Source: Anthoceros angustus
Taxonomy: Eukaryota > Plantae > Anthocerotophyta
Reading direction: 5' to 3'
Assembly: GCA_010909165.1 (NCBI GenBank)
Contig: MU008169.1
Coordinates: forward strand, 1,612,001 to 1,676,000
Length of the DNA: 64,000 nucleotides
Below are positions 4,378-56,776 of the stretch, in pieces. The position numbers and the translations under genes were made by a program. Below the pieces are notes generated by a model. The model worked only from the letters and a program-made list of their open reading frames with translations. It was not told where the DNA came from and did no database searches. Position 1 is the stretch's first letter; each line of letters begins with the position of its first letter.

Positions 4378-7300
4378 CTAGTCATCAAAGGTTGTCTTCT
4401 TGCCTGGGAATAGGAACAAGCTTCTATTAGAACCGCTAAAACGGAACAGACAACTGATCAAATCGCAACAATGAGAGGCAGAAATGCAAGCCACAACTGA
4501 CCTGTGCCTGCTGCAGCAAGATTTACTTTAGTCCTGGGGGCTCCACCCCGGCCCCCACCTCTACCACCACCTCCACGGCCACCTCCACGACCGCCTCGTC
4601 CTGCAAGTCCAGATAACACGCTAAGCAACACCTCTTAGGTGACTAGAATAGAATACTGCACCATAGGGCGTTTTCAGACAACATGCATACCGCGATCACC
4701 ACTGCCAAAACCCCCTCTTCCACCTCTACCACCACCTCTTCCTCCGCCGCCAAAACCACCTCTTCCTCCACCGCGACCACCTCGGTCCCCACCACCCCCT
4801 CCAGCAGGTGCTTGTCCAGCCTCATTTACCACTAAAGATCTACCATTAAGATCAGATCCATCATACTCCAGGGCCTTGGAAAGTCCATCCTTGCTGTCAA
4901 ACTCAATATAGGCAAACCTGTGACATGTACAGGAACACAAACCGGTTTTGGTGAACCTATCAAATTAATACTTACCACTTTGAGGACAGCAAACTGGAAT
5001 TAAACTTAAGTTTAGTGCTCACCCCTTTATATTTCCAGATTCCCGATCTGTTGGGATACGGACCGTCACAACATCTCCACATTCACTGAAATGCTCTGTT
5101 AATGCATTTCGTATCTGCAATACATTGGGCAGTGTAGCAACCAAGCAATCAGAAAAACTTAAACTTGATTGTGGCCGCCATAAGTTTTAAGTGAAAGAAA
5201 GAGGCACTCACTGAGTCTTCATCTTGAAACTTGTCAAAACCTCTAACAAAGGCAGTTTTGTCAGACCCTGGTCTGGGAGTCCCTGGCGTTCCACTGCGTG
5301 TAGAATAGAAAACTTCCATCAAGCTCCAGTGCAAAGCACATGACCTACATGCTATCTGATTGTAGTCACATCAGGAAAAAAACAGAGGGACTCACCCGAA
5401 GCCCCCAGCTCTTGGGGCACTACCTGGGGTAGTCCGCTCACGCTCCCTTGCTAAATCTACCGCAATATTCCTACCGGACAAATTATCACCATTTTTCTTG
5501 AGGGCCTGCACCAGGATAATTCAAGCACACCATCAGTTCGGTCGATTCAAAATATATAGCCGTCTACACCAAGTACAGAGGAGCCATTACCAAAACCTTC
5601 TAACATACTAGTCAAAACAATAATGAAAAACCAGGCACGGAGGAGCAACCTTCTCTGCCCCAGCTTTGGTCTCAAACTCAATATGACCAAATCCTCTGGA
5701 TTGCCCATTCTCATTCTGGGCAAGTCTTACATCCAAGATCTCTCCACAGTCCTTGAAGTATTCATAACTGGTATGAACAAAACAACAATCACATTAGCAT
5801 TCACACTACGCCTGGAAAGTAAGCTGAAAATGTTATCCTTGGAAACTTCACCATCCTGTAAAACTACAGTGAGAAGACATACAGGCTGTCTGAATCCACG
5901 GCCCAAGCCAAATTCTTCACAAAGATAGTCTTGCTCCCATCGCTGTCATCAGCCCCTTTGACCGGGGTCTTGGGCTGTGGAATAACATACCACATTTACT
6001 GCAACTTCAAACAGTTCACACAGGTCTTCGCGAAAATTTACACTGTCCAAGGCTCTCACCTCAACTTTTTGCTTTTTGCTCTTGGGTTTGTCTTCCTCTT
6101 CTCTTTCCTCCTCACTTTCTTCATCCTCACTTTCTTCATCCTCACTTTCTTCATCTTCACTTTCACCCTTTGCTGCAGATTTTCCATTTTGCACTTTTGA
6201 TGTTGCAGGCTTTGCTGCAGATTTGCCTGCAGGTTTTGGAGCTTCCTCTTCATCACTATCTTCCTCATCACTCTCCTCGTCATCGCTGGAGTCAGCTTCA
6301 GCAGTCTTTGCAGCTGGTGTCACAGGCTTTTTGACTGCAGCTGGTGTCGATGGCCTTTTAGCTGCAGAAGGCTGGCAGAGTACAGAACAATCAGTTATAT
6401 ACTTTGATTGGATTGCACAAGTATCAACCACGGGGGAATCTCGGAGAGAGAAAGTTACCTCTTCTTCGCTGTCATCATCACTATCATCCTCATCACTTTC
6501 AGCAGCAGGGGCTGCCTTTGCTGCTGGTACAGGAGTTTCCTCATCATCACTATCGTCACTGTCATCCTCATCATCGCTCACTGCTGCTGCTGGTTTGGCG
6601 ACTGCTGGTTTGGTGGTGGCAGCCTCCTTCCCTACAGGCTTCTTAGGCTGCACAGAAATATACAACCACCATTGAGGAAGCAGGCAAAAACTTGAGAAAT
6701 TATAAACTGAAAACAAACATCAGGAGAAGACAAGCCACCTCCTCATCACTGTCATCCTCATCACTGTCGTCACTGTCATCCTCATCACTGTCATCGACTG
6801 CTGCTTTCGGTTTACCAGCTGCATGAGTTGCTACTGATTTGGGTTTTGCAGCTACCTTTCCAGCAGGCTTCTTCGGCTGGAAAAGACAACACTGCTCCGT
6901 CATATCCATTTTGTCAAAAGTAAGACAGGGAAGGCCAGCAGTAAAATGTGTTCACGTACAGCTTCATCCTCAGAGTCATCCTCATCAGATTCATCGTCAG
7001 ATTCCTCCATGGGAACAGGCTTGGTAGCAGGCTGCAACCATCCCAGGCAACAAACTCAGCAAAATGCTCTGCTCAAAACGTCTGCAACAAGACGCTGAGA
7101 CTATATCCACACCTCTTCATCAGAATCACTTTCATCATCACTGTCTTCCTTGGCCGCAGGCTTCCCATTGTCTGCTGGCGTCATTTCCTGCATCCCAAGC
7201 CAAGCCCTAATCAGCCGCCCAACCAACAATCAACAAGTTCACAGACCGGCGGCACAACATCATGCTCAGCCTCCAACCTCATCAGAAGACTCATCACTGC

Positions 7301-8118: not shown

Positions 8119-8221
8119 GGTGGATGCGCGGATGAATTGGGGCGGGCAGGTGTGAGAGCAGCGTATTCCACAGACTCATGAATATCCGTCGTCTACCAGT
8201 TCAACATATATAGGGCGCTGC

Positions 8222-8250
8222 TGGGCTTACAAAACCCTAAGCTCTTAGGG
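8222..8250. promoter_or_regulatory. Telo-box (AAACCCTAA) with adjacent site II-like TGGGCT upstream of nucleolin
   Basis: AAACCCTAA at 8232-8240, palindrome CCCTAAG-CT-CTTAGGG, TGGGCT at 8222; about 110 bp upstream of the ATG. This motif pair is typical of plant ribosome-biogenesis genes. Confidence 0.55.
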
Positions 8251-8743
8251 CTGCTCGCTCCTCGACGGCGTTACTGTTATAGAATTTTCTTCTTCTACTG
8301 AATCTTCAAAAAGAAAGATCACGAGCCAATACACTGAAGGCGGAAAATATCAAGTGTACCGGCTAAACTTGGTACCTACTGCTGAAGGTACATTCTGCGT
8401 TTTGGTGGGCAGTCCACTTGACCAGTGCAGGCCAACTCGGGCTGCCAAATTCGAATGCCATCCGTGTGGGAGGAGACGCGATTTCTGCGTCTCCTGGCCA
8501 AAGCCTCTCACCATATGGTGTCTGCAAGTGCCGGTGCCCTGCCCCTCACGTGCTTCAATCAAAATGACCCAGGGAAGTCCAGATGCTTCTGCGTCGATTA
8601 GATGACACAGCATCACCGTCGGAGTTCGAGCCTCGGAGGCCCAAGTTTCGCCAGGATTCCGAGCAACAAGTGTGAGCAGTCCGTTGCAGAGGCGTAGCTC
8701 GGAGGGGATGTGATCTACAAGTTGTCCTGGCCGCCAAGGTCAT

Positions 8744-11131
8744 TCAAGCAGCGTCTCCACATGAGCACAGACCATCCCTGAAATGGTGGACGCGGTGGGC
8801 ATCCCGGACGATAAGCTCCCTCTTCTCAGCCTGCGAGAGAACCTTGGCGACGCTGTGGCAGCTGCTGCACATACGTAGAGATTTGGTGACCAGCAGAGTG
8901 GAGCCTGCAGGAGTGTTTAGTAGGCCGAAAGATATGGCCAGTCTTTCCGCATGCCCACACATGGTGTCGTCGTTTTCCTTTCCGGCTGGGACGGTAGGGA
9001 ATCCCTGGATCTGGGTGGTAGGGGGAGACATTTCCTCGTCTCCTACTGTAAACTGATGCACCTTGTGGTTCACTTCGATGAAGGCCTTTGCAGGCTTTTT
9101 ACGTACGCCTGACGCTATCCGCAACCTGTCGATGTCCCGCGCGTCCTCCAACCTGCCGGCAGTTGCGTATAGACCTGACATGAGGATATAGGCCGAGCCA
9201 TGTTGAGGTTCCAGCTGCAGAAGACGGTCGAAGCACATGCGTCCTCGCCCGACATCACCGTGGAGATTGCAGGCAGTTAGCAAGGACCTCCATCCCACGT
9301 AGTCGTTATCGAAGGGAAGGGATTGCAACATCTGTTCAGCCTCGTCCATGTGACCCGACCGCCCGAGCAGATCAACCATGCAGTTGTAGTGCTCCACAGT
9401 TGGTGCGATACCATGCCCTTCGACCATCATCTTGAAGTACTCTTGCCCTTTGCTTACCAGCCCCATGTGACTGCATGCCGTGAGCAGAGACAAGAATGTG
9501 CAATCATCGGGCTGTACTCCCTGTACCTTCATTTCCTCGAAGCAGTCCATGGCCAGTTCACAGTTATTGTGCTGGCCATATCCGTTAATCAGCGAATTCC
9601 ATGTGACTACGTTTCTCAGAATTAACCCATCAAAAACGCGCTGAGCGTCTTCCAGGCTCCCGCATTTGGCATACATGTCCACTAAAGCGCTCCCAACATG
9701 TGCATCTTGTGCGAGCCCCCTGTCTAGAATTTCAGAGTGTATCTGCCTGCCTGCTTGTAGGGCACCGATGCTCCCACAGACTTTCAGAGTATTGATGAAG
9801 GTCACCATATCAGGCTTTGTACCCTCTCGTTGCATACTTTCGTACAAATCAAAAGCTTCGGGGCCAGACCCATACAGGGCATAACCACCTATCATGGCAC
9901 TCCAGGTCACAATGTCTCTTGCGGGCAACCCATCAAAGACCCTGCGAGCATCATGTAAGCACCCACACTTGAGGTACATGTTCACCACAGCATTCCAAAC
10001 AAATAAATCTGATCCTCCGACAGTTTCCCGAATCTGAGCGTGGATTTGGTTTCCCTTGTCCACAGCCCCCGTCATTCCACATGCTTGCAAAACAGCCACA
10101 AGAGTGAACTTGTCAGGCGTCACACCATCTTCCTGCATACTTTCATAGAGGTCAAGGGCGTCCTGACCAAGCTCATGGTGAGTATATGCTTGGATCATCA
10201 CATTCCACGAGACTACGTCTTTGTGTGACAATGTGTCAAACACTGTACGCGCATCCACCAGGCTTCCACACTTGGCATACATATCGACTAGGGTATTGCC
10301 AACACTTACCACACCTTGAAGCCCTCGTTTCTGAATGTCGGCATGAATTTGCCTGCCCTTCTGGATGGCTCCTCTCATAGCACATGCTTTCAAAATAGTC
10401 TTAAAAGTAGCATAATCAGCAGAAACCCTGTCATCCTGTTGCATCAACCCGTACAGATCCAGGGCTTCTTGTGCGAGCCCATTTTGGACATACCCCGAGA
10501 TCATGGCATTCCAAGTCACCACATTTCGGGTTATCAAGCTGTCAAACACTGCCCGAGCATCCCTCACGCTCTTGCACTTGCTGTACATGTCCACAAGGGA
10601 GCCCCCAACACAAAGGTTGGACTCAAGTGCACTGTATACAATATCAGCATGCACAAGCCTGCCAGATCTTATATCTCCAAGACTGGCGCAGGCTTTCAGG
10701 ACTGCCACAAGTATATAGCTATTCGGTTTCACCCTTGACATTCGGAGCTGCTGGTACAATTCGATAGCCTCCAGAGCCTGTCCCTGCTCTCCATGTGCGG
10801 AGATGATTGAAGCCCACACGTGTTCATCTGGAGCAGGCAGTTTGCCAAAGACTTGCTTTGCTTCCAGCAAGCTTCCATGCGAAGCATACATGCGGATAAT
10901 GTGGTTGGCCAGAAATGCATTGGACTCAAACTTCCGTTTAGCCACAAGAGCATGAATTCGCCTGCCAACTACCAGATCTTTATTCGCAATGCATCCCTTG
11001 AGGACACGATACAACATGTCTCTTGAAACAAAACGCCCTTGCCGGTCCATGCTGTCCAGCTCCCTCGAGGCCTCATCGAACAGTCCATCATCACATAATT
11101 GACTCCAGCTCTCCTGGCTACATTCCAACAC
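8744..11131 (-). CDS. PLS-class PPR protein with E1/E2 and DYW:KP deaminase domain (candidate U-to-C organellar RNA editing factor)
   Basis: Uninterrupted 795-codon frame of P-L-S triplets, then KKPAKAFIEV, CGHAERLA, KSLRMCSSCH and HHFRDGLCSCGDAA*. The ORF opens at GTG after an in-frame stop, so the true start is a later ATG or an upstream exon. Confidence 0.92.
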   Translation of the reverse strand: MLECSQESWSQLCDDGLFDEASRELDSMDRQGRFVSRDMLYRVLKGCIANKDLVVGRRIHALVAKRKFESNAFLANHIIRMYASHGSLLEAKQVFGKLPAPDEHVWASIISAHGEQGQALEAIELYQQLRMSRVKPNSYILVAVLKACASLGDIRSGRLVHADIVYSALESNLCVGGSLVDMYSKCKSVRDARAVFDSLITRNVVTWNAMISGYVQNGLAQEALDLYGLMQQDDRVSADYATFKTILKACAMRGAIQKGRQIHADIQKRGLQGVVSVGNTLVDMYAKCGSLVDARTVFDTLSHKDVVSWNVMIQAYTHHELGQDALDLYESMQEDGVTPDKFTLVAVLQACGMTGAVDKGNQIHAQIRETVGGSDLFVWNAVVNMYLKCGCLHDARRVFDGLPARDIVTWSAMIGGYALYGSGPEAFDLYESMQREGTKPDMVTFINTLKVCGSIGALQAGRQIHSEILDRGLAQDAHVGSALVDMYAKCGSLEDAQRVFDGLILRNVVTWNSLINGYGQHNNCELAMDCFEEMKVQGVQPDDCTFLSLLTACSHMGLVSKGQEYFKMMVEGHGIAPTVEHYNCMVDLLGRSGHMDEAEQMLQSLPFDNDYVGWRSLLTACNLHGDVGRGRMCFDRLLQLEPQHGSAYILMSGLYATAGRLEDARDIDRLRIASGVRKKPAKAFIEVNHKVHQFTVGDEEMSPPTTQIQGFPTVPAGKENDDTMCGHAERLAISFGLLNTPAGSTLLVTKSLRMCSSCHSVAKVLSQAEKRELIVRDAHRVHHFRDGLCSCGDAA

Positions 11132-12112
11132 CGGATTCGATCAAAAACAACACTCCTCTCCACTGCTAAAAAACCTAATACAACTACCATGACTGCTGCA
11201 CAGGAATTAATTTTCACCTGTCAAGCTTCTGACACCCAGCTCTGTCCCTGCCACCAGGCACACCTCCTTCCGCCAATGCCTCACTCCTTCCTCTCTTCAA
11301 CACCACGTCCTCACTATCCGGGCCTGACTGCCATGACCATTCAACTATCAGTTCCAATCTTCCAAGCACGCATCTCCAAAACACACACTCTCGTAACCCA
11401 GCCTTTACCTGCTTCATCCTGGATTCGGCCAGAAACTGCCTCCACAATCCCTCGGCTGCACTCTGCTCATCTGCGGCACACCTGGAAACATAAAACCTTC
11501 AAAGCCATATAACAGGCGAGTCACAAAGAGGCAACAAAACCGGACTCCAGGCCTCACCCTGACTGCCGTGCTCCGCCGTGCCCTCCAGGCTGGACAGCCG
11601 CCTGGACCACTCCAACGCGGGGATGTGTGCCCCAGCCTTGCTCCAAACCAGCCCGCCGACAGCCCCGGACCTCCTCATCGCATCTTCAGCTCCCTCCAAG
11701 CATTGCTGCAACCAGCACTCACCTCACAGCCTCCCGGAGACCTAGCAACACCAGGATTCCTGCACCACCGGCCTTGCAGGGCTTCCATCCATGGCAACAC
11801 TCCACCCTGTCCCTGCCTTCCTTCAAATTGCACCAACTTTCCCTTGGCTGCCGCACTCCAATGTCCCCGGTGCCTTCACTTCACATGCTTCGTCTTCCTC
11901 TTTCGGAATTTGGGAAATTGTTTTATTTGTGTATACTCCTTAGCAAGGAAACGTTACTCAATATAAGAGCTAGAGGCGAAGTGATGAAAGCGTGAAACGT
12001 CTCAGTTTTTCTGTGCGAGACTCGCAGACCAGGAGAGCGTCATCCGAAACGAGATCGTCTTCAGTCATCAGGCTTGCGGGCTGCGCGTGGTGTGGTGAGC
12101 AAAACTTCGCAA

Positions 12113-12325
12113 ATGACCCGAGGCAATCAGAGAGACCGCGATCGGGAGCGGGCGGCCGCTAGGACGGGCGGCGGGAAGGGAGCTAAGGTCAAGGATGACG
12201 GGCTCACGCCGGAGCAGCGCAGGGAGCGGGACGCAAAGGCATTGCAAGAAAAGCAGGCCAAGAAGGCGGCGAGCGGGCCTCCTGCCGGAGCGCCATCGGG
12301 GACTAAGCCTGCTGCCAAGAAATGA
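12113..12325 (+). CDS. SERF: SERF/4F5-family small protein, 70 aa
   Basis: MTRGNQRDRDRERA...GLTPEQRRERDAKALQEK; ATG at 12113. Confidence 0.88.
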   Translation: MTRGNQRDRDRERAAARTGGGKGAKVKDDGLTPEQRRERDAKALQEKQAKKAASGPPAGAPSGTKPAAKK

Positions 12326-13162
12326 GAGCAACAGCTAGCCGGCTGCCCCAATCTCTTGGTGCGGCGCACTTCTCATTTGCTTCCTGCGTGCCGGCACGGG
12401 AGGCTGCCGGCTAGCGCGATTTCTGTGCATATCCTCCTTCTCAAGCTATCCAAAAAGCCTGCTTCACCATGTGTGCGAGTGATTTCTGATCTGCTGCTGC
12501 CATTGGATCCGGCTCTTTGGCTTCAAGCTTCTGTCACGTTGTTGGTAATTGAGTCAGACAGAGCGGCTTTTGCGTGGATTATACCGGATCCACATCTATT
12601 TCATGTTTGCAAGTTCTCTCCTTTTCTCGTGTTGTCTTTCGCACTGCCTGTGAACCGGGCCGCTTGGGTTTCTCGAACGATGTCTGCTAGGGATTCCAGC
12701 ACTCGAGGTACCTAGCCAGGTAGGTGACGCGGTTTCTGTGTGAATCCTGCTTCTCGCTTCTCCAGCGTCAGATTGCGTGCGACTGATTTCTGATGTCGAG
12801 ACAGAGCAAGCTGCAACTTCTCGATTTCCCTGGATCCGCTCAAGGACCGTGTTCCTTCAGTTCAGTTGACCTGCTCTGCCCGACAGGAAAACTGGGTCCT
12901 TGGGTTTTGCCAACCATATACATCACGTCCAATAGGCGCGAAATTATTCTCAGAGTTCATTCAACATCCATAATCACAATCGTCATCTCATCTTGGGGCC
13001 GTCGCTAATGACACACTCACGACATGAGTTGTTGTCCAAGCACGGTGGTACTCGCAATAGATAGTTGGGCCGCTACAATTACGCAGACAATAGATCTGCG
13101 TAAGGGAACATAATCACAGTTTCTAAGAAATGGCAGTGAGGTGATCTAGCACCCACAAGTTA

Positions 13163-25124: not shown

Positions 25125-26612
25125 ATGGGCGTGGTAACGGCTGTAACCGTGAGCGCGCTATGTCAGCAGGGGAAGCTCTCTGAGGCCATTGGGGCCCTGG
25201 AATCTCTGGCGCAGACAAACTCTGGTTTTTTTCAGTCTCTGTTCTACACAGGCTAAAACTGTGTGCAGCTAAGAAGGATTGGTTCATGACCTCACTGTCA
25301 AACTTGGGAACGAGTCGGATGCATACTTGGGGAATCATATCTTGCGCATGTATGCATATGGGGGTAGGCTGTAGGAGGCCATGGATGTGTTCACCAGGGT
25401 TGGCAAACCAAATGTCTTCATGTGGTTCTTCATAATCTCTGCGCATGCTAAGCACGGGAAATCTGAGGAGGCCATACAACTGTACCATGAGACGCGCAGG
25501 TCAGGAGTGAAGGCGGATGCTCACGTCTTTGTAGCTGCCCTTCGAGCTTGTGCATTAGCCGCCGACTTGGAATCTGGCAGAAAAGTGCACTGTGATGTGG
25601 TGCAGAGTGACGTTTGTTTTAACTTGTTTGTTGGCAGCTGCCTGGTGGACATGTATGCAAAATGTGGCGAACTGAAACATCCACGCCAGGTTTCTGACAG
25701 CATGGCCACAAAGGATGTGGTGACATGGACGGTGCTGATGGCTGGGTATTCCCAGCAAGGACTTGGACATGAGGCGCCTGTTGTGTATGGACAAATGGAG
25801 GAGGTGGGCCTCATTTTGGCTGACCATGTTACTTTTTCTTGCCTTCTGAAGGCCTGTGCAAGCACTGGCACCTTGCAGAAGGGCAGGCAGCTGCACTCAC
25901 AGATTGTTGAAAGAGGACTGCTGGATGACATACAGGTGGGCACCTGCCTGGCGGACATGTATGCAACATGTGGTGAACTGGAAGATGCACGCCAGGTTTT
26001 TGAAAGCATGAACACAAAGAATGTGGTGACATGGAATACCCTGATCGCCGGGTATGCACAGCAAGGGCTCGGACATGAAGCGCTTGTAGGTATGGACAAA
26101 TGGAGCAGGAGGGGCTGATTCTAGCTAACCATGTTACTTTTGCTTGCCTTCTGAAGACCTGTGGAAGCACTGGCGCCTGACAAAAGGCCAGGACGCTGCA
26201 CTCACAGATTGTTGAAGAGGATTGGTGGATGACGTAGTGGTGTGCACCTGCCTGGTGGACATGTATGCAACAGAAGGTACATCGATTTCTGGTCGGAGAA
26301 AGGAGACAGGGATATTGCTATTATGGTAGAACGCACGAATGCACGTCTGAAGCAGGAAGCAGGCCATTTGCCTCACACAAAGTTGGTGTTGAAGCCTCTG
26401 TGTGAGAAGGAAAAACAAGATTTGCTTTGTAGACACGCTGAGAAACTAGCTCTGGCGTTAGTCTCTTGAACTCTCCGACTGGAACACCTCTGATGGTGCC
26501 GAAGAATCTACGCATGTGCCGTGATTGCCACAGGTCCACGGAGGTCATGCCAAGGCTTGAACAAACAGACTTTGTTGTAAGGGATTGTTGCAGTTGTCAG
26601 GGTCGGCCGTGA
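25125..26612 (+). pseudogene. Degenerate PLS-PPR gene ending in a GRP-type (DYW:KP class) deaminase remnant
   Basis: PPR motifs broken by stops and frameshifts; KVHRFLVGE...LLCRHAEKLALA, a frameshift, then KNLRMCRDCH...VVRDCCSCQGRP* (TGA 26610-26612). Confidence 0.85.
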
Positions 26613-49335: not shown

Positions 49336-51948
49336 ATGGATGCTTGGAGCGTGAAACTTCATTTTCGGAGAAGGCGACGGTGGCAGCTGCTTTTCTGCAC
49401 ACCACAAAGACAAATTGGCGGGATAACAGGTCTCATGGGAAGAGCTTCCTTAAGGGACGTAACGCCCGGCACGGTGAGCATACTATCTCAGAAGGGGCAG
49501 GTCACTGAGGCTGTTGAGGCTCTGGGAGTTCTGGTGCAGACACACGGTCGTTTTTCACCATCTCTGTTGTATGCTGTTCTCAAAAGCTGTGTGGTGAAGA
49601 AGGATTTGGTACTGGGTCGCCTTCTCCATGCCCTTACCGTAAGAAAGGGATACGAGTCGGACACGTTCTTGTGCAATCACATCGTCCGAATGTATGCGTC
49701 TCATGGCAGGTTACAGGAAGCGATGGATGTGTTCACCATGGTTGCTGAACCAAATGCCTTCATGTGGTGTTCCATGATTTGTGCGCATGTCAAGCACGGT
49801 AAAGCGAAGCAGGCTGTAGAGCTTTATCATCGGATGGGCAGGTCAAGTGTAAAGCCGGATGGGCATGTGTTTGTAGCAGCGCTACAGGCTTGTGCAAGGG
49901 GGGGAGATATAAGAAGTGGAGAGCAGGTACACGCTGATGTTCTGGCTAGTGGGCTTGAGCCTGATATGTTTGTCTATAATGCCTTGGTTGACATGTATGC
50001 AAAGTGTGGCCGCTTGGAGGAAGCTCGAGGAGTGTTTGACGGGCTTCCTCATAAGGATGTGGTGACCTGGACTGCTCTGATAGCAGGATATTCCCAGCAG
50101 GGCAGGGGTCAGGAAGCCCTTCACCTCTACACTGCTATGCAAGAAAAAAGCATTGGCGCACCTGATTCTGTGACATTTGTCTGCCTCCTGCAGGCCTGTG
50201 CAAGTGTTGGTGCCCCTGCCTTGGAGACGGGAAAGCAGCTTCATGCCCAGGTTGGAGAACGAGGGCTTGATTTGGTTGTCGGGAACAGTTTGGTAAACAT
50301 GTATGCTAAATGTGGCAGCCTCGTGGATGCACATGGTGTGTTTGACAGGCTCTGTCATAAGGATGTGGTGACATGGAATACAATGTTAGCAGGATATTCC
50401 CAACGGGGAATGGGTCAGGAAGCCCTCTATCTTTACAGCAACATGCAAGGAGAAGGCAGGACTGCACCAGATTCTGTGACATTTGTGTGCCTACTGCAGG
50501 CTTGTTCAAGTGTGGGTGTCCCAGCTTTGGAGGCAGGCAAGCAGCTTCATGCAGCGATTGGAGAGCGAGGACTTCAGGTCGATGTTGTTGTAGCTAACAG
50601 TTTAGTGAACATGTATGCAAAGTGTGGCAGTTTACAGGATGCTCAGGGAGTTTTTGATGGACTTGAGCAAAAGGATGTGGTGACGTGGAATGCTATGATT
50701 GCAGCATATTCCCAGCGGGGCATGGGTCAGCAAGCTCTTAGTCTTTACACTGCTATGCAAGAGCGACGTACTCTGGCACCTAATACAGTGACATTTGTGT
50801 GCCTTCTTCAGGCATGCGCCAGTGTGGGCACCCCAGCTTTGGAGAAGGGGAAGGAGCTTCATGCTCAGATCGTTGAAGGAGGGCTCCAGGCTGATACTGT
50901 TGTAGGTTGCAGTCTTGTGAACATGTACGCGAAGTGTGGCAGCCTCCATGATGCTCACAGCGTGTTTAATGGACTCTCTGAAAAAAATGTGGTGTCGTGG
51001 ACTGCTTTGATATCAGGATACTCTCAGCAGGGCATGGGTCAAGAAGCCCTTCATCTCTATACTGCTATGCAAGCAGAGGGACTTTCTGATCCTGATTCTG
51101 TGACATTCGTGTGCCTCCTGCAGGCATGTGCAAACGTGGCAGCTTTGCATACGGGAAAGCAGCTTCATGTGGAAATCGAAGAACATGGGCTTCATACTGA
51201 TGTGTTTGTAGCGATTAGTTTGATCGACATGTATGCCAAGTCTGGGAGCATGGTTGACGCCCAGCTGGTGTTTGATGCATTGCCTGACAGAGACATTGTC
51301 GTCTGGAATGCACTTATTGCCGGATTTTCCCGTCAAGGGGACTGTGGGATGGTTTTTGACTTGGTTGACAGAATGAGAGAGCATGGCATTCAGCCAGACG
51401 GCGTCACACTTGTCAGTGTTTTAACAGTATGCAGTCATGCAGGTCTGGTGAACACGGGACAAGAGTATTTTGAATCCATGACCAGACACAACGGCCTCAA
51501 ACCCACCGTTGAGCACTACACCTGCTTGGTGGACCTCTTAGGTCGTGCAGGCCACCTTGAAGAGGCACTAGCCGTAGTAAGGACAATACCTGTACCACCC
51601 GACGCTGCAATTTGGCACACTCTGTTGGGTGCTTGCAGAAAGTGGAGCAACGTGAAGATAGGATGCCATGCTTTCGATGAGGCAGTGAAGTTACACGAAA
51701 AAGATGCCGCAGCATATGTGTTTATGTCCAACATATATGCTAGTGCCCAAATGTGGGAGGAGGCACAGGAGATGCAGCGGAGGAGAATAGGGATCAGGGC
51801 ATGGAAGCAAGCAGGCCAGAGCTGGTGGACAGATACAGAGGGACTGGTGCACACTTTTGTGGTTGGGGACATGAAGCACGTAGATCGTGAAGATATATAC
51901 GAAAGCTTAAAACAGCTCAGTTCCCAAATAGAGAAAGGAAGGCACTGA
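49336..51948 (+). CDS. PLS-class PPR protein with E1/E2 and WW-type box, truncated before the deaminase core (E+ type), 870 aa
   Basis: Intact ORF with near-identical P-L-S triplets; ends WKQAGQSWWTDTEGLVHTFVVGD...QIEKGRH* with no HxE/CxxC. Confidence 0.9.
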   Translation: MDAWSVKLHFRRRRRWQLLFCTPQRQIGGITGLMGRASLRDVTPGTVSILSQKGQVTEAVEALGVLVQTHGRFSPSLLYAVLKSCVVKKDLVLGRLLHALTVRKGYESDTFLCNHIVRMYASHGRLQEAMDVFTMVAEPNAFMWCSMICAHVKHGKAKQAVELYHRMGRSSVKPDGHVFVAALQACARGGDIRSGEQVHADVLASGLEPDMFVYNALVDMYAKCGRLEEARGVFDGLPHKDVVTWTALIAGYSQQGRGQEALHLYTAMQEKSIGAPDSVTFVCLLQACASVGAPALETGKQLHAQVGERGLDLVVGNSLVNMYAKCGSLVDAHGVFDRLCHKDVVTWNTMLAGYSQRGMGQEALYLYSNMQGEGRTAPDSVTFVCLLQACSSVGVPALEAGKQLHAAIGERGLQVDVVVANSLVNMYAKCGSLQDAQGVFDGLEQKDVVTWNAMIAAYSQRGMGQQALSLYTAMQERRTLAPNTVTFVCLLQACASVGTPALEKGKELHAQIVEGGLQADTVVGCSLVNMYAKCGSLHDAHSVFNGLSEKNVVSWTALISGYSQQGMGQEALHLYTAMQAEGLSDPDSVTFVCLLQACANVAALHTGKQLHVEIEEHGLHTDVFVAISLIDMYAKSGSMVDAQLVFDALPDRDIVVWNALIAGFSRQGDCGMVFDLVDRMREHGIQPDGVTLVSVLTVCSHAGLVNTGQEYFESMTRHNGLKPTVEHYTCLVDLLGRAGHLEEALAVVRTIPVPPDAAIWHTLLGACRKWSNVKIGCHAFDEAVKLHEKDAAAYVFMSNIYASAQMWEEAQEMQRRRIGIRAWKQAGQSWWTDTEGLVHTFVVGDMKHVDREDIYESLKQLSSQIEKGRH

Positions 51949-54444: not shown

Positions 54445-56397
54445 TCAACGGCCATCTCCACAAGAACATCGTCCATCCTTGAAGTGATGCACGCAGTGTG
54501 CATCTCTCACAACAATCTCCCGAATTTCAATCCTGGAAATGATCTTAATTCCCCTATGGCAGTTGTCACACATCCGCAGGCTCTTTGTGACCAGCAGTGT
54601 TGTACCCTCAGGAGTGTTGAGAAGACCGAAAGCGTCTGCCAATTTCTCAGCATGTCCACATAGAGAATCTCCGTTGTCCTTATCAGATCATGGAACCGGG
54701 TGTGGCAATCCGATTTCCTCCTCCGCATGTCGTTTCAGACTTTTTAGTTTCAGTGCGACATCATCGGTCATCCTTCCCACTGTGAACTCATGCACCTTGC
54801 CATTCACTTCAATCAGGGCCTTTGCACGCTTCTTCTCGGCACCAGCAGCTTTAATGAGACTATCTATGTTCTCATCTGCCCACCTGCCAGCAATTGCGTA
54901 GAGGTCTGACATGAGTGAATAGCTAGCAGACTGCTGAGGTTCTAGTTGTATGAGGCGGTCGAAACAGCGCTTGCCTATCTCCACATTCTGCTGAGTCCTG
55001 CAAGCACTCATCAAAGCCATCCAACCCACGATATCTTGGTTGGATGGCATGGCCTGTAGCATAGCCTCTGCGTCCGCTACCCGCCCTGACCTGCCAAGCA
55101 TATCAACTATGCAGGTTATGTGAGCTACTGTGGGCATGATGTCATACTCTTCCGTCATCACCCTGAAGTACTGCAAACCCTCATCCACCAGGCCCACATG
55201 ACTGCATGCCACAAAAAGAATGGCAAAGGTTGAGTGATCAGGATCGACTCCATGTGGTCGCATCTCTTGAAAGCACTGCATTGCCATCTTACAGCCATTG
55301 TGCTGGCCATACCCGTTGATTAATGCATTCCAAGTGACCACGTTTTTGCAAGAGAGCCCATCAAACACATTCTGAGCTGTGTCCATTCTCCCAAATTTGG
55401 CCTACATGTCAACCAGGGCACTTCCAACAAAAGCATCTGCCTCCAATGTGCTGTCCTCGATCTGAGCATGAACCTGGTGGCCTTCCCGTATGGTCCTGTG
55501 CTGCCACAAGCTTGGAGAACACTGACATTTTTGAACTTGTCGGGAGTGATGCCCTCTTGCTGTTTTCTTGCAAATAGTTCAAGCGATTCCTGACCATGAC
55601 CCTCCTGTGCGTATACAGTAATCATGGCACTCCATGTAACCACATCTTTGACGAGCACCTCATCAAAAACTTTGCGAGCACCCTCCAGGCTCCCACACTT
55701 GGCATACATGTCGATCAGACTGTTTCCAATCACTAAATCTGCTTCGAGCCCTCTCTCCAAAATATCTGCATGGAACTTCTTGCCCATCTGAAGGTCTCCT
55801 CTGCTGATACATGCTCTCAGCAACCTTGCTAGTGTGAAATTGTCTCCACACACTCAAGGGCCCCCTGAGCACGGCCATGCTGGACATACCCTGTAATCAT
55901 GGCACTACAGGTCTCTACACTCTTGCTTGGTTGTCTGCCAAACACTTTGCGAGCATCTTCCAGGCTGCCGCACTTGGCATACAGGTCAACTAGGGTGCTC
56001 CCCACGTACTCATTGTCTCCAGCCCACTGTCCACTACATCACCATGTACATGCTTCCCTGATGCCAAATCTGCTGCTCTAGCACATGCTTTCAGGGCCGC
56101 CACGAATACATATCTATCCGGCTCCATAGCAGATTGACGCATCCTCCTGTACAATTCCTTAGCGTGTTCAGGCCTGAAATGATCAGATATGATGGCGCTC
56201 CAAGCAAACACATTCGGAGCAGGCAGTTGCCTAAACACCTCTGTTGCTTCCGACAAACTGCCCTGAGAGGCATACATCCGGATGATGTGATTAGTCGAAA
56301 ATGCATTGCCCTCGTACCCACTTCTCACAATCAGATCATGAACCTGCTCAGAATAGGATCCTTCTTTGCAATGCAGCCATTCAGAACGCTGTACCAA
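54445..56397 (-). pseudogene. Disrupted PLS-PPR gene with DYW:KP-type deaminase
   Basis: PPR motifs split over several frames; KKRAKALIEVNGKVHEFTVG; in-frame TGA at 54688-54690; then [32 protein letters not shown]. Confidence 0.85.
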
Positions 56398-56776
56398 ATG
56401 TCTCTAGAAACAAAGGATCGTTGAAAAACCATGAGTTGCGAAGCTTAGCTAACAGCCTCATCAAGTTGTCCTTGTCCTTCCACACAGAGTTTCTGCCAAA
56501 CTTGATCACACATGGGTCCATCTTTCCTTGCCACCCTGCGTGACGACAACACGATTTGTCAATGGCCACAACAAGGGCAAAACCAACATACGTATCGGGA
56601 ATGCCGAGAACAGACACTTATACCTTCTAACATGGTAGGATGGCCTACCAGGATGTCCCGTCCACGATTCTGCCGCTTGTGCCCATGAAGAGCTGGCCCG
56701 AGTGTGACGGACATAAGGATTACTGCCTTGGTCTGGACTTTTGAGTCCGCTCACTGGTCCGTCTGTCGCGGTGCTC

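Follow-up and report, generated by a model that had tools for sequence, protein, structure and literature searches.

A 64,000-nucleotide (nt) stretch of the Anthoceros angustus genome (contig MU008169.1, positions 1,612,001 to 1,676,000; hereafter the window, numbered from its first letter) holds, on the minus strand at 8744-11131, a real, transcribed and maintained hornwort nuclear gene for a PLS-class pentatricopeptide repeat (PPR) protein that ends in a DYW:KP domain with a DXX-type terminus. The gating region of this domain, which precedes the catalytic HAE motif, is reduced to about 36 residues and predicted to be an unstructured linker. DYW:KP proteins are linked to U-to-C editing, and the product would be an organelle RNA-editing factor of this known class; the novelty lies in the length of its gate and does not extend to the kind of enzyme. 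A first-pass annotation of the window had taken the frame for an intact DYW:KP editing-factor gene, which is borne out by the stop-free frame, by the Pfam hits and by all of the motifs that it quoted (KKPAKAFIEV, HAE, LRMCxxCH, CSC and the GDAA end), each of which was located in the sequence. The parts of the gene and of its product, here called the short-gate protein, are as follows.

8744-11131, minus strand: mechanical open reading frame (ORF), 795 codons with no stop inside
8744..11050, minus strand: coding sequence (CDS) supported by mRNA, 768 aa, starting at Met28 of the mechanical ORF and running through the stop codon
9161..11050, minus strand: PPR tract and E1/E2 (Pfam PPR families, E_motif, heuristic motif parsing)
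8747..9100, minus strand: DYW:KP domain, from the KKPAKA box to GDAA, ~118 aa
8954..9061, minus strand: gating region, 36 residues, starting at the V of VHQF and ending with the Gly that precedes HAE (37 with the His)
8966..9031, minus strand: gate stretch MSPPTTQIQGFPTVPAGKENDD, domain residues 44-65, predicted disordered (AlphaFold2 predicted local distance difference test, pLDDT, <50; no secondary structure)
8945..8953, minus strand: HAE, with the zinc-binding (Zn1) His, the catalytic Glu and, between them, Ala instead of Ser as in the KP type (sequence, alignment)
8882..8884, minus strand: Lys in TKSLRMC, counterpart of Lys88 in designer KP domains and of K915 in OTP86 (invariant alignment column K93)
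8855..8869, minus strand: CSSCH (in LRMCSSCH), Zn1 cysteines (sequence, alignment)
8747..8767, minus strand: CSCGDAA, the Zn2 CxC followed by the DXX-type KP ending (sequence)

Tandem P, L and S repeats are followed by E1/E2 and a C-terminal DYW deaminase with both zinc sites, as in other PLS-class PPR-DYW proteins. Pfam recognized PPR_2 (8.8e-77), PPR (3.3e-75), a full-length E_motif at residues 624-686 (1.5e-08) and DYW_deaminase (PF14432) at residues 718-793 (2.6e-28). Heuristic motif parsing laid out the PPR tract as five P1-L1-S1 triplets and then P2-L2-S2, and a similarly heuristic reading found canonical PPR code pairs (N/S at position 5, D/N at the last position) in 9 of 11 P/S motifs. 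As these pairs are mostly N/D, the site predicted from them is U-rich, and the PPR tract together with E1/E2 looks able to bind a specific RNA site of this kind. Hornwort PPR-DYW proteins form a family with hundreds of paralogues.

Catalytic core and gate of the DYW:KP domain

The domain carries the marks of the KP subclass, namely a KPAxA box where other classes have the PG box (its KKPAKAFIEV has the first K at 9100-9098), HAE (KP domains carry HAE or HCE in place of HSE), the Lys88 equivalent and a non-DYW ending. VHQF begins at 9061, CSC lies at 8767-8759, and GDAA with the stop occupies 8758-8744. In an alignment of 80 DYW domains, including 43 of HAE/HCE type and 36 of HSE type, the short-gate domain keeps 13 of 13 invariant columns, among them H70, E72, K93 (the Lys88 position), C98, C101, H102, H125, C132 and C134. 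The deaminase core is complete, with the Zn1 ligands (H/E/CxxC), the active-site Lys and the Zn2 ligands (HxxxH...CxC) all present. At columns that are at least 80% conserved among KP domains it deviates by K73R, A77S, N94S, I116L, L67M and one change within the gate. The DAA terminus emphasized by the first-pass annotation is indeed present, although it cannot count as a special feature and was rejected as one: KP endings are highly variable among the relatives, and DXX is a described group of KP C-terminal triplets, listed together with DRH and GRP (supplement of PMC7611903).

The gating domain of OTP86 is an insertion of 55 residues (H837-G891) that comprises helix alpha1 and a beta-finger able to cover the active site and acts as a "gated zinc shutter" (PMC7611903); such an insert sits between the PG/KP box and HxE. 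From VHxF to the His of HAE, the short-gate domain was initially counted at 37 residues and re-measured at the same value, which is 15-16 residues below the KP mode of 52-53 and about 20 below OTP86 or the synthetic PG protein. The whole domain accordingly measures ~118 aa, against a canonical KP length of 132-133 aa (PMC11845758). HMMER aligned it in two blocks both to the synthetic PPR-DYW protein of structure 9KFX (1-51 on 456-505, 61-136 on 535-610) and to OTP86 (26-47 on 6-26, 65-137 on 65-137), leaving ~20-21 gating residues, roughly OTP86 849-886 or 9KFX 506-534, with no counterpart. Between VG and the GH(V)P turn there are 14 residues, two of them prolines, compared to ~23 in KP relatives, and between this turn and HAE there are 17 compared to 24.

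Structure prediction points the same way. With the alignment as input, AlphaFold2 modeled the short-gate domain with a mean pLDDT of 84 and a core above 90, while residues 44-65 fell below 50 and no secondary structure was predicted between residues 40 and 70. A control model from the same alignment led by the canonical DRH-type protein P0001 reached a pLDDT of 93, with a confident gate and a 16-residue helix at 45-60 (pLDDT >90). Foldseek placed both models on 9KFX, 7O4E/7O4F and 7W86, and the TM-score to OTP86 (7O4E/7O4F) was 0.59-0.66 for the short-gate model and 0.76-0.85 for the control. The succession of helix alpha1 and a complete beta-finger that characterizes a DYW gating domain is thus not seen in the short-gate domain by AlphaFold2 or HMMER, the helix and part of the beta-finger being lost, and the earlier claim that the gating helix is largely lost stands, with the gate disordered in the model where P0001 has a helix. 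According to the model, the MSPPTTQIQGFPTVPAGKENDD stretch is what is left of helix alpha1 and the first beta-finger strand.

How unusual such a gate is was judged from a small sample, namely all proteins returned by four similarity searches with the query or P0001 as bait.

HAE-type relatives (n=53): gate of 52-53 residues in 38, 44-51 in 9, 54-71 in 6
HSE-type proteins with a clear PG box (n=48): gate of 55-57 residues in 47
HSE-type outliers P0152, P0162, P0128 and P0127: gates of 38-41 residues, two of them of 38, one of 40 and one of 41

In this sample the short-gate protein has the shortest of 54 HAE-type gates and is the sole one without the helix. The 52-53 mode itself reflects a published shortening, since more than half of KP gates are without 3-4 residues that include the HP motif (supplement of PMC7611903); the remark on KP gate shortening in that supplement, as far as the relevant part goes, mentions just this 3-4-residue deletion. 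Among proteins P0001-P0359, the HAE-type gates below 52 residues (9 of 53) are mostly short through lost beta-finger residues. In PG-box DYW domains, by contrast, the length is almost constant, and the spread within the KP class fits a relaxed constraint on the gate. That the short gate would be unique among DYW domains was rejected, as a few HSE-type proteins have gates of 38-41 residues. Because KP gates vary and some HSE-type gates are nearly as short, 37 residues represents the extreme of a continuum rather than a new architecture. The possibility that it is merely a common KP length variant, which the first-pass annotation had raised against its own proposal, is therefore met halfway: KP gate length is variable and comparably short HSE-type gates exist, but no other HAE-type gate in the sample is this short.

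The closest sequences found to the short-gate domain are P0001, P0004, P0006 and P0009; that its closest domains are DRH-type KP domains agrees with a hornwort origin. Its nearest described relatives are the hornwort DYW:KP domains of the DRH/DXX subgroup (Gutmann et al. 2020, as cited in PMC9478123 and PMC7611903), with which it shares 53-58% identity over the domain, the KPAxA box, HAE, LRMCxxCH, Lys88, CSC, a non-DYW ending and a PLS tract with E1/E2. It differs from them in its 37-residue gate (52-53 in the relatives), in a proline stretch in place of helix alpha1, in the missing first beta-finger strand, in a Ser for the Asn of KNLRMC and in its DAA ending. The DYW domain of Arabidopsis OTP86 (7O4E/7O4F) and the synthetic PPR-DYW-RNA complex (9KFX) share the deaminase fold and zinc sites (Foldseek 3e-13 to 1e-09, identity 35-38%), but are C-to-U deaminases of the PG class, whereas the short-gate protein belongs to the KP class. 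Designer editors KP2, KP3 and KP6 have the domain class and the essential lysine in common with it (PMC9478123, PMC11845758); they are built from consensus sequences, their domains have the full length of 132-133 aa, and both U-to-C and C-to-U editing by them has been measured, while the short-gate protein is natural, has a domain of ~118 aa and is known from sequence. Arabidopsis DYW1 (7W86) and DYW2 are likewise natural proteins in which the N-terminal gating part is off consensus (PMC7611903), but they carry no long PPR tract and operate in trans on proteins of the E+ type, in contrast to the full PLS tract found here.

Transcript structure and maintenance of the reading frame

A search of sequencing runs returned two holders of the locus in the source organism (taxon A) and many runs from two related taxa (B and C), and contigs of four runs were aligned to 8200-12700. 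Runs of B and C carry about one sixth of the 31-mers of the locus, which fits a divergence of roughly 5%. Contig X1 of taxon A, 3368 nt long, covers 8253-11117, 11218-11322, 11408-11470 and 11558-11892 with 0 mismatches and 0 gaps, whereas DNA contig X2 from the same sample is unspliced and colinear with the genome. All three skipped pieces run from GT to AG on the minus strand, with one cut moved by one base. Since X1 skips GT-AG pieces and X2 is colinear, X1 represents RNA, and both transcription and splicing of the gene match the direction of the ORF. RNA contigs of B (X5) and C (X18) have the same three splice joints as A.

8253..8743, minus strand: 3' untranslated region (UTR), as far as RNA contig X1 extends
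11051..11117, minus strand: part of the last exon that lies 5' of the start codon; open frame, no ATG
11118..11217, minus strand: intron 3, 100 nt, GT..AG; joint in RNA contigs of A, B and C
11218..11323, minus strand: exon 3, 5' UTR (RNA contigs)
11324..11408, minus strand: intron 2, 85 nt, GT..AG (RNA contigs)
11409..11470, minus strand: exon 2, 5' UTR, with an in-frame TGA (RNA contigs)
11471..11557, minus strand: intron 1, 87 nt, GT..AG (RNA contigs)
11558..11892, minus strand: exon 1, 5' UTR with short upstream ORFs; contigs of three taxa end at 11888-11892

The mRNA thus consists of four exons, with the whole 768-aa protein encoded in the last one. Traced back through exon 3 into exon 2 of the spliced model, the main frame meets a TGA at the joint of exons 1 and 2. 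An upstream coding exon with a transit peptide was sought in the spliced mRNA, and no in-frame ATG was found between this TGA and Met28 (11050). Exons 1 to 3 also show indels between the taxa. Together, the in-frame TGA, the missing ATG and the indels identify the three upstream exons as a 5' leader, and since the spliced mRNA offers no in-frame ATG before Met28, the protein has no obvious targeting extension. The gene seems to have lost an ancestral N-terminal coding part: the sequence at 11051..11117 retains a similarity to the first PPR-like motif in a paralogue at 49336-51948, and this paralogue starts ~70 residues earlier. The PPR gene family is typically described as intron-poor, and a leader with three introns is unusual against that background.

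Comparison of the three taxa gives good support for a maintained reading frame. The 2373 nt compared as CDS contain 0 indels in B and 0 in C; every gap letter that the B and C contigs have between 8426 or 8538 and 11116 is explained by indels at 8540-8631 in the 3' UTR.

3' UTR, taxon B: 30 substitutions in 318 nt (9.4%), 5 indel events
3' UTR, taxon C: 18 substitutions in 206 nt (8.7%), 2 indel events
CDS, taxon B: 108 substitutions in 2373 nt (4.6%), 0 indel events
CDS, taxon C: 110 substitutions in 2373 nt (4.6%), 0 indel events

The contrast between CDS and 3' UTR is significant for substitutions (Fisher test, p = 6e-04 in B and 0.017 in C) as well as for indels (p = 2e-05 and 6e-03), and a CDS that acquired indels as fast as the 3' UTR should show ~37 events where 0 were observed. 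Among the 40 of 212 differences listed, 5 of the 10 in the CDS are synonymous. The last 119 nt of the DYW domain hold four differences between taxa, of which one is synonymous and the other three are conservative replacements (L>I, A>V, S>T). As the CDS is free of indels in B and C, the short gate is common to all three taxa; the first-pass annotation had proposed to look for the deletion in orthologues. This in turn means that the gate deletion predates the split of the three taxa and has been retained since. An assembly deletion, which had been considered as a cause of the short gate, is ruled out by the identical RNA contig of A, which matches the whole coding exon, and by the indel-free CDS in B and C; the short gate is real DNA. 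Word-index and exhaustive representative searches of protein databases for orthologous proteins returned none, the best match being 51-58% identical.

Paralogues and neighbors in the window

Several related genes and remnants lie in the same window.

54451..56504, minus strand: pseudogenized KP paralogue ending in CSCGDGR, with frameshifts and an in-frame stop inside a 48-residue gate
~26230-26612, plus strand: GRP-ending KP remnant (CSCQGRP, then stop), frameshifted, with a gate of ~53 residues (canonical length)
25282-26220, plus strand: PPR repeats carrying stops, preceding the GRP-ending remnant (sequence)
49336-51948, plus strand: intact PLS PPR paralogue of 870 aa with a basic N-terminal extension (sequence)

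The two KP remnants with gates of 53 and 48 residues, with which the short gate had first been compared, were both recovered with these lengths (~53 and 48). The pseudogene at 54451-56504 has the same short beta-finger and the same KSLRMC (N94S) variant as the short-gate gene, and it has kept the helix. Because this pseudogene shows the second shortening yet retains the helix, loss of the beta-finger residues is the older event, and loss of the helix is specific to the lineage of the short-gate gene, although it too precedes the split of the three taxa. The frame at 49336-51948 stops within the gating helix (...VHTFVVGD...QIEKGRH) and is without HxE and all that lies beyond it, which makes it an E+-like truncated DYW architecture.

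Two further observations concern the flanks of the short-gate gene. Just upstream, at 12100-12700, an RNA contig in all three taxa has a word depth of 189-491, compared to 27-58 for the PPR transcript, and probably represents a neighboring, highly expressed gene. On the other side, a 255-aa ORF at 5949-6716 on the minus strand contains runs of acidic residues, Ser, Ala and Lys (e.g. DDEDDSDDSDDEE and SEDEESEDEESEDEE) and looks like an exon of a nucleolin/Nopp140-like acidic protein.

Editing activity and competing explanations

Judged from its sequence, the short-gate protein has an even chance of being an active editor, working mostly in the U-to-C direction. It would carry out site-specific pyrimidine editing, most likely U-to-C as proposed for KP domains, by means of the conserved lysine; the active site would not be closed by a gate, so that gate-based autoinhibition would be absent, and the deaminase domain would dock on the PPR/E2 part through conserved C-terminal interface residues. 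Residues of this kind, which hold the domain on the PPR/E2 part, have been described for 9KFX (PMC13324415). U-to-C editing by designer KP domains depends on Lys88, whose removal favors C-to-U (PMC11845758); the matching lysine of OTP86 is K915 (PMC7611903). Editing by a gate-less protein also fits the view that KP domains may not need strong autoinhibition (supplementary note 6 of PMC7611903) and the finding that a synthetic PPR-DYW protein edits almost as well when gating-region residues are changed to alanine (PMC13324415).

A number of points weigh against an active editor. Removal of the beta-finger in OTP86 (delta875-890GGG) markedly lowers editing (PMC7611903), the RNA complex shows contacts between E2 and the gating region (PMC13324415), and natural KP proteins have so far neither been assayed nor shown to be active (PMC11845758). 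In the domain itself, Ser replaces the near-invariant Asn of KNLRxC (N94S) and Ala77 is changed to Ser. The gene is located among PPR pseudogenes, and with no in-frame ATG upstream of Met28 its protein does not have the ~70-residue N-terminal extension of the paralogue. Selection is likewise measured coarsely: a dN/dS ratio (omega) below 1, which the first-pass annotation had proposed to check, is indicated by a crude value of roughly 0.3, but this is inferred from the few differences listed (40 of 212), and substitutions are nearly as dense in the CDS (4.6%) as in the 5' exons (5.5%), so that the substitution contrast alone is not strong.

Part of this evidence would equally suit an expressed and conserved protein that is catalytically inactive, whose PPR tract would be retained to bind RNA and whose gate-less domain would be no more than a docking or structural module. 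Such a protein could act in RNA stabilization, in processing, or in site recognition for a deaminase supplied in trans. The strong effect of beta-finger loss on OTP86 editing, the predicted disorder of the short gate and the Ser beside the active-site Lys are all in line with this explanation, and selection on the PPR tract alone would explain the conserved frame equally well. However, all zinc ligands, the catalytic Glu and Lys88 are retained, and the differences in the last 119 nt are synonymous (one) or conservative (three), where a purely structural module would be expected to drift. We regard an inactive protein as rather doubtful, though it is the alternative that holds up best.

Alternatively, the gene could be a young, non-functional paralogue that is still transcribed, its gate and N-terminal losses marking early decay in a birth-and-death cluster of PPR genes. 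The neighboring KP copies are pseudogenes, the protein has no presequence-like extension, its leader contains upstream ORFs, and its gate is the shortest among 54 HAE-type domains, all of which might be expected under decay. Yet decay is unlikely in view of 0 indels in the 2373-nt CDS of two taxa that are ~5% diverged, compared to many in the flanking UTRs, and of a CDS substitution rate that is half of that in the 3' UTR. The three taxa moreover have the splicing and the short gate in common, which places the deletion before their divergence and means that it has been retained.

With respect to the direction of editing, synthetic KP proteins also perform C-to-U editing and single substitutions shift the balance between the two directions (PMC11332814, PMC11845758), and for this reason the direction cannot be read from the sequence. 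It is nevertheless quite improbable that the gate-less KP core with its substitutions is an ordinary deaminase of the C-to-U type: synthetic KP6 does perform C-to-U in vitro and in cells, and E64G, among the substitutions that flip direction, corresponds to the Gly before HAE in the short-gate protein (PMC11332814, PMC11845758), but the Lys88 equivalent is retained, and this Gly is general in hornwort DRH-type KP domains and thus does not discriminate between directions.

A stronger version of the active-editor reading, in which the short-gate protein is a natural, gate-less and fully active U-to-C enzyme kept by selection in the genus, is put forward tentatively on the basis of its sequence. 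At stake are the mechanism and the regulation of U-to-C editing, as the gene provides a natural deletion with which to probe whether the "gated zinc shutter" of C-to-U enzymes matters for KP enzymes. If the protein is inactive, it would indicate that PPR-DYW genes can be retained for purposes beyond catalysis. If it is instead a fully active U-to-C enzyme, the reverse reaction would not require the gating domain, and programmable U-to-C editors could draw on a natural KP catalytic module of reduced size (~118 aa).

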